Positions 46,197 to 50,490 of a DNA stretch of 64,000 bases are shown piece after piece. The notes beneath the pieces were generated by a model that was not told where the DNA came from, made no database searches, and saw only the letters and a program-made list of their open reading frames with translations. How positions within the stretch are numbered: position 1 is the stretch's first letter; each line of letters opens with the position of its first letter. The DNA is from Monocercomonoides exilis PA203. Taxonomy: Eukaryota; Protista; Preaxostyla. A program made the position numbers and the translations under genes. The stretch covers positions 1,240,001 to 1,304,000 of the forward strand of contig LSRY02000014.1 of assembly GCA_001643675.2 (NCBI GenBank), in the 5' to 3' direction.

Positions 46197-46773
46197 ATAT
46201 TATTTTTTTTGCAATATTCACATCAATATTTTAAATGCATTTCTTTGAATATTTCAAGTTTTTATTTTCTTATAACTTTGGACTGCAAATAAAGTATTTA
46301 TGTTCTTGACAGTATTTGTTCCATTGGTAAATTTTGTGTAATTTATTCAATGTTTTATGAATCAATACTTCTGTTGTTATTCTTTATGTATCGTTGAATA
46401 ACTGTCAAATTGTTGATGAATTTTTTGAAAATCTAATGAATTATGTTCAGTTTAATATTTTAATGGACATATCAAATTGAATTTCATTTTAAGCAATATT
46501 TGATCTTCTATTTGCAAGTTCAAAGTTTAAAAAGAAATTTTCTAAAAATTTTTTCTTTCTCTTTTTTTTAAGAAATGCACAAGAAGTATTTTCATTCGAA
46601 AAAAATGCTCAAGATGTATGAACATTTTGACATTGTTCAATAATAACTAAATTACCTACCAAAAAAGACAATATTATAAAAAACAAACTGAAATTGGCCC
46701 ATCATGCAAAAGATTGAAATTTGATCAGTCTTGGAATTATTTTGATCGAAAAGATTTATTAACATTTGATAAA

Positions 46774-48225
46774 ATGTCTAGCGGAAAAAATTCGGGATTT
46801 ACCGAATCTTTGGATGAAGAAGAAAGAAGCATCGAGCAATGGAGAATTAAAAAATTGGTTAAAACTTTGGAGAATGCAAAGGGAGAAGGAACAAGCATGA
46901 TTTCTCTCATTTTAGCACCAAAAACTCAACTATCACAAACTCAAACAATGCTTACAGAAGAGTATGGTACAGCGTCAAACATCAAAAGTAGAGTCAATCG
47001 ATTAAGTGTTCTCGAAGCAATTGTGTCAACTCAACAACGTTTGAAGCTTTATAACAAATGCCCACCAAATGGACTGTGCATTTTCTGCGGAACAATTTCT
47101 ACAGATAAGGGACCAAAGAAAATCACAATTGATTTTGAACCATTCAAACCAATCAACACTTCTCTTTATTTGTGTGATAACAAATTCCACACTGAACCTC
47201 TCGGAACTTTGTTGGAATCAGACGACAAGTTTGGTTTCATTATCATGGATGGTAATGGTGCGTTATTTGGTACATTGCAAGGAAACACACGAAACATCAT
47301 CACCCAGTTTACTGTTGATTTGCCAAAGAAACATGGGCGAGGAGGACAGTCTTCTGTTCGTTTTGCACGTCTGAGAATGGAAAAGCGTCACAATTATGTG
47401 CGTCGAGTTGCAGAAGTTTCAGTTCAATGCTTTATCACAAATGACAAAGTTAATGTTGCTGGACTTGTTCTTGCAGGTTCTGCTGATTTCAAGACTGAAC
47501 TTTCTCAGAGCGAGACCTTTGATCAGCGTCTCCAAGCCAAAATTATTAAGATTGTTGATGTCGCCTATGGAGGAGAGAACGGATTTAATCAGGCTATTAA
47601 TTTGGCTTCTGATACATTATCAAACGTTCATTTTGTGCAAGAAAAAGCACTCCTTCAACAGTATTTCGACGAAATCGGACAAGATACTGGAAAGTTTGTG
47701 TTTGGAATCCGTGATACAATCGCAGGACTTGAAATGGGCGCAGTTCAAAAATTGATCGTATGGGAAAATTTGGATATTGATAGAATTGAATTTCGCCATC
47801 CAACAACTGGTGATGTTTCGATAGTGTATCTGACACCAGCTCAGCAGAAGGATCCTTCATACTTTCATGAGAAAGGAGTGGAGTTGATATTAGTGTCAAA
47901 AGAGCAGCTCACAGATTGGTTTGTGCTAAACTACAAGAAATATGGATGCACTCTTCATTTTGTGACAAACAGAAGCAGTGAAGGTTCTCAATTCTGCAGA
48001 GGTTTTGGTGGAATTGGTGGGTTGTTGAGGTACAAAGTTGATTTTTCAACTCTTGATGCACATGAAGCTGATGGGTTGATGGAGGATGATGAAGCTATTG
48101 GTTCTTCAAGCTCTTCTTCTTCTTCTTCTTCTGTTGCTTCGTCCACTGCAGCTGATGCAGGCTTCTTTGGAGACGAAATTATGGAAGAAAACCCGTTTGA
48201 TGATGATATCTCTTCGTATTTTTGA
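46774..48225 (+). CDS. ETF1: Eukaryotic peptide chain release factor 1, intronless
   Basis: GTS, TASNIKS, YLCDNKF (YxCxxxF), HGRGGQS (GGQ), [11 protein letters not shown], acidic tail ending SSYF-TGA. ATG at 46774 (the ORF track starts at an upstream TTG). Confidence 0.98.
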
Positions 48226-48810
48226 TGCTACTCTGACACAAATGATGCAAACAGAGCAGAAGGAGGAGAAAAAGAGAGGCGCACAAAAAGAAGAAGGGAG
48301 AAAGAAAAGGGAACAAACAAGCAATGCGATGGGAACGCCTTCTGCTCTTTCTTTGGAGCCAAAGAAAAAGAACCAAAAACAGCCATCGGAAATAAAAGAA
48401 AAGGAAAGAAGCATCAAAGCAGAATTCGACAAGGAAAAGAATCGCTATTAAAAGAAAGTATGCCAAAAAAGCCCGAAAGAGAAACTCAAATTACAACCAA
48501 GAAAATAATTGAATCATCGAACTTTGCCGATGAATTGGTAAAAGAACGATCAGTTTACCAAAGGTTGGAGAAGCAGACTGTAGAAATTGAAAAGCAATTT
48601 GAAGTCATCTTCAACCAAATGCGTTTGAACGGTCAAATGATGAATTCATTTTTCTTCGATTGTGATGAGTTATCTGGGTTGTACAAAAAGTGCATGAGTA
48701 TTGCACAAAAATTTAGAAAAGTCTGGAGTAAGAAGAGATATAGAAAGAAAGAAAGAGGATTTCTTGGAGGGATGAGAAGGAAAAAGAAAAGAAAAAAAGG
48801 AAGGTGCTAA
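48226..48810 (+). other. In-frame 194-codon extension behind the eRF1 TGA, with an overlapping 75-codon +1-frame ORF
   Basis: Codon-by-codon reading of 48226-48807 shows no stop in the eRF1 frame (next stop TAA 48808-48810). The +1 frame is open 48224-48448. Confidence 0.6.
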
Positions 48811-49449
48811 TGTATTTGTGCGATGTATTGTAAATTGTAGTTATAATTTACTCAAATTTCTTTGAATAATCAAATTGTGTTCTGAATGAAAGTGCATTTA
48901 GAAATTTTATGGAACATTTATGAAACATTTATGAAAGACATTTGGCTCATAAAGATGTCTGAGTTAAGTTCATTCCATTTGTAGAAAATATCTCTGTCCC
49001 AACATAAAAGAGATATGAACATATATTTTTTTAACTTTTTTTTGACTTTTTTTTTCATTTATTTTTTATAATTTTATTGCCCCAATGCAAATATTTTTTT
49101 ATTTGGCCATTTGAAAGTTATTTTTTAAAGATATGGAGCAAAATTCTTGCATTAATGAAAAAAACAACGATTTATTCCAAACTTTTTTCTGTTGTTATGT
49201 CATTATTTGTATTTCATTCCTATGGAAAAGATTTTTTAGAAAAATAAAAAAATCGAGGAAAAAATTATATATGCTGAAAATACGGGAATGCTGGAATTCC
49301 TTAATTTCTTGTATATTGCAATTGTTAATATGGAATAGTGTTGATTTATGCATTTCTTTTTTATTGGAAATAAGTGTGTGATGTGGGGGTAAAAAACCTT
49401 AAAAAATGAATATATTATGGGAAAAAATTACAAAATAAATATTAAAAAA

Positions 49450-50490
49450 TTTTTAGAGTTCGTAATCAGAAGTTTTTTCTTCTTCTTGTGACAGGCCCGA
49501 TGTTTCTTCTTCGCTGTTTTCTGAATCATTTTCCACTTGCTCATATTTTTCATTTTCTATCTCGTATTCACTGACAAATTCAAATATTTCCTAGAAATTA
49601 TATTCTTACGAGGCTTTGACCAAAACCATTGCAAGGTGATCTGCAATTAATGATTTTCGAACTCCGTTCGGTGGAAATGCTTTTCGCAAAGTTCCCCATA
49701 AACCTTCGATCGTGTTTGTGCATGCTTTTGTAACCGGCTCAACGAAATTCCTTTTGTGGCACACTGTTCTGTGTAGATATCCATACGTATTTAAGCATTC
49801 ATATGCCTTCCACTCATCGCTCATGATGATGGCTTCAGGCTTAATGTGTTCAAGAATAATTGGAAGAAGCGTTTCTTTTGTTCTGTTGTGGACAATCATC
49901 ACAAATCGAGGTCCTGCTCCTCCACCATCAAGCCTTTCCACTCCGCCAAACAAACAAATTTGCTCTTTTCTTCTTCCCCTTCAATTCTTTCTTCGACGCC
50001 AGACAGCTTCATCGATTTCGACGATCTTTCCTTTTTCTCCAATATGTATTTGCTTCAAATTCCACATCTTCATGCACACTGCCCTAAAAATGCCTGCACA
50101 AAATGCAACTGTATTGCGATAAATGCCTATTAATTCTGCAGTTTTGTTGATAGAAATTCCAACCCATTGTCACAAATGTGTTCAAAAAGTTTTTCCCAAT
50201 CCTATTTTTCTCTTTGAACACATAGTCCCATCAAAACAGATTTTTTGATTTTGCGGCAAGAACAGTTCCAATATCAAGAGTTCTTATCGTTCATTTGGAT
50301 TGTCATCCGTCTTCGGCATTTCTTGCACACAAAAACCTCGCCTTTGAAAAAACCATGTGAAACCAATCCCACGTCAAATCTTCGTTGTGAAATATGGCAA
50401 AATTTTTTTGAAAAGTTCCATGACTTTAATTTTGTCCCACAAAAGATCAAAAAAGATCACAAGATTTCGATCATTCCGTTCCCATTTTAT
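49450..50490 (-). mobile_element. Merlin/IS1595 (ISXO2-like) DNA transposase pseudogene
   Basis: Zn-ribbon relic CKKC...WNCSC; IGEKGKIVEIDEAVWRRRKN*RGR...FGGVER...NRTKETLLPIILEHIKPEAIIMSDEWKAY...HRTVCHKRNFV...TNTIEGLW (D-D-E triad); in-frame TGA at 49981-49983 and further lesions upstream. Confidence 0.88.

Follow-up and report, generated by a model that had tools for sequence, protein, structure and literature searches.

A transcribed open stretch of 194 codons in frame with the stop codon of an eRF1 gene of Monocercomonoides exilis

In one of the two eRF1 genes of Monocercomonoides exilis, the reading frame of the release factor stays open past its TGA for another 194 sense codons. This stretch occupies positions 48226-48810 (+ strand) of the window, by which we mean the 64,000 nt of DNA that were analysed (C8:1240001-1304000 of the M. 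exilis PA203 ONT assembly, 82.3 Mb, 101 contigs; PMC8767320). The reading that we consider most likely, at a probability of roughly 0.45, is that the stretch holds an unannotated separate small gene or downstream ORF, which lies in the eRF1 frame by coincidence. According to this proposal, eRF1 would terminate normally at its conserved TGA and the next 585 nt would be transcribed contiguously with it. Within them, a young, M. exilis-specific ORF of 116 codons, beginning at ATG 48460 and predicted to encode a helical hairpin and a polybasic tail, would be translated separately, whether from a transcript beginning within or overlapping the 3′ region of eRF1 or, as a downstream ORF, from the eRF1 mRNA; its sharing of the eRF1 frame would be a one-in-three coincidence. 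This ORF exists, is of non-random length, is transcribed, is unique in the genome and is absent from relatives, and it is its translation from its own ATG that we infer. A sequence-only reading of the same DNA had proposed that ribosomes reach the stretch by reading through the eRF1 stop codon; it had itself named a separately transcribed gene as a refuter of that proposal, and a separately translated gene is a live possibility.

The eRF1 gene, its paralog and related mRNAs

The eRF1 coding sequence lies at 46774-48225 (+ strand), from ATG 46774 to the TGA at 48223-48225, and encodes 483 aa, with no intron in this stretch. All three Pfam domains (eRF1_1, eRF1_2 and eRF1_3) were found in the ORF with E values between 3e-23 and 2e-45, and the NIKS, YLCDNKF (YxCxxxF) and GRGGQS (GGQ) motifs could be read in the translation and did not vary in the alignment. 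By these domains and motifs, the gene is an eRF1. The nearest named protein was M. exilis eRF1, and the exact 483-aa product is present in NCBI, UniRef and EukProt. Its ending, ...NPFDDDI(S/T)SYF followed by the stop, is common to other oxymonad eRF1 proteins, and both the C-terminus and the position of the stop codon are conserved across oxymonads. The C-terminal tail also carries a Ser/Ala-rich insertion, which is present in the closest oxymonad eRF1 proteins and missing from those of Blattamonas and Paratrimastix. Inside this insertion there is a (TCT)n serine run (48108-48140) that differs by one codon between the two M. exilis paralogs and that broke one RNA contig.

The second eRF1 gene (C5:531791-533230; L004:1495-2943) is annotated as KAH7827679, a protein of 482 aa. 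The paralogs share 97% identity at the protein level and 92% at the nucleotide level, with 92 of the 109 differences between their coding sequences falling at third codon positions (dS 0.38, dN/dS 0.04). Nucleotide homology sets in ~13 codons after the start of the coding sequence and breaks off exactly at the TGA. The pair is one of two things, an old duplicate of which the coding sequence alone has been conserved, or a pair in which gene conversion has been confined to the coding sequence. Past the TGA of the paralog, GC content is 0.25 and the next in-frame stop comes after 10 codons; the TGA here too is set in UUU-UGA, and the +1 frame beyond it runs for only 6 codons. A same-strand ORF begins ~260 nt downstream of the paralog stop, showing that tight tandem spacing occurs, and this speaks for a separate small gene at the window locus as well.

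Two eRF1 mRNAs from related oxymonads encode proteins that are 78-79% identical and have the same ...DDDITSYF C-terminus. One of them ends in UUC-UGA and reads TGA-GGA-TGA, with the next stop after 1 codon, and the other ends in UUC-UAA and meets its next stop 19 codons on. Their 3′ regions, of 375-480 nt or more, did not resemble the extension. The sequence-only reading had looked to related eRF1 loci for evidence of a functional extension, and the comparison turned out against it: neither the 97%-identical paralog nor either of the related mRNAs carries the extension, and no homolog was found anywhere among 1.84 billion representative proteins. On these comparisons the 194-codon stretch is specific to M. 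exilis. A conserved eRF1 end, together with the lack of the extension in all three other eRF1 3′ regions (0/3), would favour a separate small gene.

RNA across the stop codon

Four metatranscriptomic RNA runs from one study contained 78-84% of the sampled words of 46600-49400. By exact-product look-up of small ORFs we recovered seven Logan contigs from seven ERR1241xxxx runs, and all of them matched the genome across the TGA with 0 mismatches, no gap and no splice. Six cover 47698-48776 (+ strand), colinear with the genome over the stop and with ragged ends at 48751-48776, and the seventh (48112-49160, + strand) spans the stop, the entire open stretch and 350 nt past the TAA. The contig comparisons, like the later searches, covered the window outside positions 49039-49075. 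Exact-product look-ups of the 483-aa eRF1, of P0002 in full and over residues 309-482, and of an 82-aa ORF at 49133-49378 returned nothing. The metatranscriptomic listing, the small run size and the transcript-like ragged contig ends suggest that the ERR1241xxxx runs are RNA, and all seven contigs probably come from a single study. The common start of the six contigs, 47698, marks the first 31-mer to set this copy apart from the paralog (the last identical run between the paralogs is 47662-47727); the seven contigs belong to the eRF1 copy of the window. Both eRF1 paralogs are expressed.

Because the seven RNA contigs agree with the genome across the TGA, this stop codon is real, and an assembly error, one of the outcomes that would have undone the readthrough proposal, is ruled out. 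The same holds for a poly(A) site right after the TGA, since the contigs run 526-935 nt beyond it. In the dominant RNA, 47698-49160 is retained whole, with no intron spliced out. Each of the seven RNA contigs passes unbroken from eRF1 coding sequence to the 116-codon ORF, a point against a separate gene, and contigs of this kind cannot distinguish one mRNA from two overlapping ones.

With regard to the 3′ end of the transcript, AAATAAA at 48390-48396 (+ strand) matches the published M. exilis poly(A) signals (PMC8767320), has no U-rich flanks and is run through by the RNA contigs. The variant AATAAT at 48865-48870 (+ strand), 55 nt past the TAA, does have U-rich flanks and is a candidate for the main 3′ end. 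With the TAA at 48808 and AATAAT at 48865, one RNA contig yet reaches 49160, and there is no poly(A) junction in the contigs.

Composition of the open stretch

Translation of 48226-48810 in the eRF1 frame gave 194 sense codons and then the TAA at 48808-48810, and the peptide quoted in the sequence-only reading was identical to this product. Its statement that coding-like composition continues past the stop was also borne out, GC content being 0.34-0.43 through 48226-48800 and 0.21-0.28 after the TAA. The whole 194-codon frame was open in 0 of 5000 dinucleotide shuffles (chance below 2e-4). Coding potential was scored with a 3-periodic Markov model, for which 48 long open frames, taken from 260 kb of the M. 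exilis genome, were the training set (coding median, 25; noncoding 95th percentile, 6). The sequence beyond the TAA scored −53 and is clearly noncoding. Thus, composition turns UTR-like exactly at the TAA of the 116-codon ORF, and this argues that the ORF is a gene in its own right. The open stretch is a composite of two parts, a linker of 78 codons and the ATG-started ORF of 116 codons.

The linker (48226-48459, + strand) is a low complexity tract, purine-rich (72% A+G) and T-poor (12%), that is open in the eRF1 frame. It was open in that frame in 249 of 5000 shuffles (5%) and in any + frame in 958 of 5000 (19%). The only stop in the +1 frame comes at its very end, at 48449, and one minus frame is free of stops, so that the linker is open or nearly open in three of six frames; stops are rare in most of its frames because the tract is purine-rich and T-poor. 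Purine-rich, T-poor tracts like this one are common in the M. exilis genome, where they lie mostly, not exclusively, within long ORFs. That the openness extends to several frames and that such tracts are common are both in favour of a separate gene behind the linker. On the other hand, the spacer is unusually coding-like for such a gene: its Markov scores, +23.7 (eRF1 frame) and +19.5 (+1 frame), are unlike those of a UTR, and its GC content is 0.40, compared with 26% in published M. exilis 3′UTRs (PMC8767320) and 0.25 in the paralog spacer. AlphaFold2 predicted the linker to be disordered. Inside it there is an alternative +1-frame ORF (48242-48451, + strand; 69 codons and a TAA), Lys/Glu-rich, for which no Pfam match was found. 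The +1 frame after UUU-UGA-U as a whole is open for 75 codons, with ATG at 48242 and again at 48245. A further ATG shares bases with the eRF1 stop (TGATG) and opens a frame of 3 codons only.

The orphan ORF (48460-48810, + strand) comprises 116 codons and a TAA and is not in the public gene set. It was open in 3 of 5000 dinucleotide shuffles (0.06%), an improbable openness when set against the remaining two + frames, which carry 8 and 9 stops, and this argues for a separate gene. Its Markov score of −11.9 lies at the 5th percentile of coding and in about the upper tenth of noncoding sequence, which, with the lack of a homolog, counts in the opposite direction. AlphaFold2, run on the single sequence, predicted, for the 194-aa stretch, disorder over residues 1-84 followed by long helices at 85-134 and 146-190 whose pLDDT reaches 93. 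Since the Met of ATG 48460 is residue 79, the sole predicted fold directly follows an available start codon, beginning 6 residues later. A fold predicted right after ATG 48460, with disorder upstream of it, would be consistent with an ORF that has its own start. Among 1.84 billion representative proteins, the 116-aa product had no relatives besides itself, and the only source of that sequence was a Logan contig; there is no second copy in the genome assembly, and Foldseek PDB, ESM Atlas and PDB sequence searches gave no usable match. The public annotation, which is based on ONT cDNA, includes the 483-aa eRF1 and has no protein for the 116-codon ORF, a further point against a separate gene.

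Other identities for the stretch were considered and rejected. A dispersed repeat, which the sequence-only reading had foreseen as a possible objection, is ruled out, as the open stretch is single copy in the genome. A tandem partial duplication of the eRF1 3′ end was set aside as well, given three short non-colinear peptide matches only (best E = 0.097) and no nucleotide similarity. The best of these aligns extension residues 30-45 (48313-48360) with eRF1 residues 398-413 (47965-48012) over TN..G..FC..FG, with 7 of 16 residues identical, and the two shorter ones fall in the same eRF1 region; the resemblance is probably due to chance. There was no Rfam match for a selenocysteine or other RNA element in the stretch. 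A COG3 N-terminal domain was rejected because the match to PF04136 (COG3_N) reached 14.8 bits (E = 0.028), below the gathering threshold of 27.9 bits, and reading the ORF as a first exon of COG3 failed because the downstream exons and a paralog were absent. The phmmer match P0122 is a protein of fn3 repeats, and its similarity is by chance. About 800 nt downstream of the open stretch there is a transposon fragment, a 115-aa ORF at 49606-49953 (− strand) that carries an ISXO2-like DDE transposase domain (PF12762, E 1.3e-16).

A count of stop codons followed by long open frames was confounded by two things, T-rich introns whose frame remains open and the shadow frames of low-complexity genes, and does not serve as a base rate here. 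Read in the frame of their flanking exons, such introns may show no more than a single stop, for instance in GTATGA at the 5′ splice site, and yield very long apparent patterns that mimic readthrough candidates; an example lies on the minus strand at ~3084-4982 of L025 (C8:960001-970000).

Readthrough, frameshifting and a separate small gene

Programmed readthrough of the stop codon, which we regard as unlikely, would operate when eRF1 is scarce: ribosomes would pass the UGA, add 194 codons and stop near the 3′ end of the mRNA, with the result that a long 3′UTR would be shielded from UPF1-dependent decay or that an inactive, relocalised eRF1 isoform would be made. This would constitute negative feedback in one paralog, the other keeping an ordinary 3′ end. 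UGA is generally the leakiest stop codon, and UPF1 is encoded in the M. exilis genome; gene content is therefore no bar to a model coupled to NMD. Readthrough is also in line with a frame that shuffling never left open, a linker that scores as coding, no annotated separate gene at 48226-48810, and RNA that is contiguous with the eRF1 coding sequence, unspliced and without an early poly(A) site. Furthermore, strong conservation of the paralog coding sequences next to wholly different 3′ regions echoes plant eRF1-1 and eRF1-2 (PMC5397192). Plant eRF1-1 has an autoregulatory 3′UTR that acts through readthrough and NMD (Nyiko et al. 2017, PMC5397192). Its stop codon is followed by CARYYA, in the form of a conserved CAATCA, and preceded by A at −1 and −2; NMD is induced by an intron more than 50 nt past the stop or by a 3′UTR longer than ~350-400 nt; the next in-frame stop lies near the poly(A) site; the arrangement is conserved in orthologs; and the second paralog has a canonical 3′UTR (PMC5397192). 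In the plant circuit, eRF1 dosage also governs both readthrough and the level of the mRNA. The M. exilis locus resembles this system in that the gene is eRF1, that UPF1 is in the genome, and that there are two paralogs with conserved coding sequences and very different 3′ regions, one long and with a distant next in-frame stop, the other with a nearby one.

The likeness does not extend to the stop codon itself. The context in the window, UUU-UGA-UGC-UAC, has U at −1 and −2, and no CARYYA motif (CAATCA in plants), no A at −1 or −2 and no CUAG were found at the eRF1 stop. In the 120 nt from the stop, no RNA structure was found either (MFE −12.5 kcal/mol, mean of shuffles −12.6, z = 0.04), so the locus also differs from structure-stimulated readthrough, which relies on UGA-CUAG or on a stem-loop or pseudoknot in a range of ~10-60 nt. 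The absence of both a leaky context and a downstream structure is evidence for a separate gene. In contrast to plant eRF1-1, the RNA contigs show no 3′UTR intron over the 526-935 nt past the stop, the stretch amounts to 194 codons with a predicted folded domain and its own ATG, and the extension is missing from related species, without homologs. The locus lacks the two defining features of the plant circuit that can be examined in sequence, leaky stop context and conservation. Readthrough must also treat the ATG at the start of the sole predicted folded part as chance.

We hold it similarly doubtful that the open frame is non-functional, that is, that the eRF1 mRNA has a long 3′UTR of ~0.6-0.9 kb, partly made of expanded purine-rich low-complexity DNA, in which a young or relic ORF goes untranslated. 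This would suit an orphan stretch that has no homolog and no annotation, a 116-codon ORF whose coding score is marginal, and a genome in which low-complexity tracts open in many frames are abundant; related eRF1 mRNAs likewise have 3′ regions of 375-480 nt or more. It is difficult to reconcile with a chance of openness of 6e-4 for the 116-codon part and below 2e-4 for the whole stretch, with the abrupt change in composition exactly at the TAA, and with a GC content far above the 26% typical of 3′UTRs (PMC8767320). In addition, at the dS of 0.38 between the paralogs, a neutral frame of 585 nt would be expected to have gained stops. Pure chance in a noncoding 3′UTR fits poorly with both the shuffle statistics and the sharp composition change. 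Much less probable than any of these is a fusion of eRF1 to the downstream sequence through a +1 frameshift at UUU-UGA-U or through a minor splice isoform that removes the stop. For the latter, a 39-nt GT..AG segment (48216-48254) would keep the frame, but 39 nt is far below the published mean intron length of 119 nt (PMC8767320), and the seven RNA contigs are unspliced here. As for the frameshift, UUU-U could let tRNA-Phe slip forward by one base and pair again, the +1 frame stays open over its 75 codons, and the linker scores in that frame as well as in the eRF1 frame. Yet an open +1 frame is expected, because the linker is T-poor; the paralog has the identical UUU-UGA with a +1 frame that soon closes, and the relatives have UUC before their stops. 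In bacterial prfB, which encodes RF2, a UGA lies early in the gene after the slippery CUU-U, and a +1 shift is needed to make the factor. The M. exilis locus is similar in being a release-factor gene with its own UGA after a slippery codon (UUU-U here) and an open +1 frame. It differs in that its paralog has the same site without an open +1 frame, and in that the +1 frame would merely add a 75-residue tail behind a conserved natural end; since the protein ends naturally at this UGA, the locus is not a sensor of the prfB type.

A separate small gene or downstream ORF accounts at once for the ATG, the fold boundary, the missing conservation and the missing recoding signals. Like downstream ORFs in 3′UTRs and orphan (de novo) small genes, the 116-codon ORF is short, starts with ATG, has no homologs and is transcribed as part of a conserved gene's 3′ region or in overlap with it. 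Unlike typical downstream ORFs, it shares the reading frame of the upstream coding sequence, and no stop separates linker and ORF. This coincidence weighs against it: being in frame (1/3) and having an open linker (0.05) combine to ~2% (roughly 2-10%), at one of only two eRF1 genes. On this reading, the best supported one, the locus is an ordinary orphan small ORF in or next to a 3′UTR.

Bacteria (RF2 frameshift) and seed plants (eRF1-1 readthrough and NMD) are known to autoregulate release factors, and the same has been proposed for giant viruses. It is possible, though in our view improbable, that one M. exilis eRF1 paralog senses termination capacity at its own UGA: ribosomes that read through, or that slip by +1 at UUU-UGA-U, would continue along a 194-codon frame to its end close to the 3′ terminus of the mRNA. 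If true, such sensing would stabilise the message or make an inactive isoform with a polybasic tail, and it would represent a recent, independent origin of release-factor autoregulation in an amitochondriate metamonad, without the plant cis-motif and on newly born coding sequence; it would also mean that a circuit of this kind can arise quickly after gene duplication. On the likelier reading, that of a separate small gene or downstream ORF, the locus would call for caution with sequence-only readthrough calls in the M. exilis genome, as a clean example of purine-rich low-complexity DNA making long in-frame open stretches past real stops, and the annotation of M. exilis would gain an unannotated, transcribed orphan ORF.
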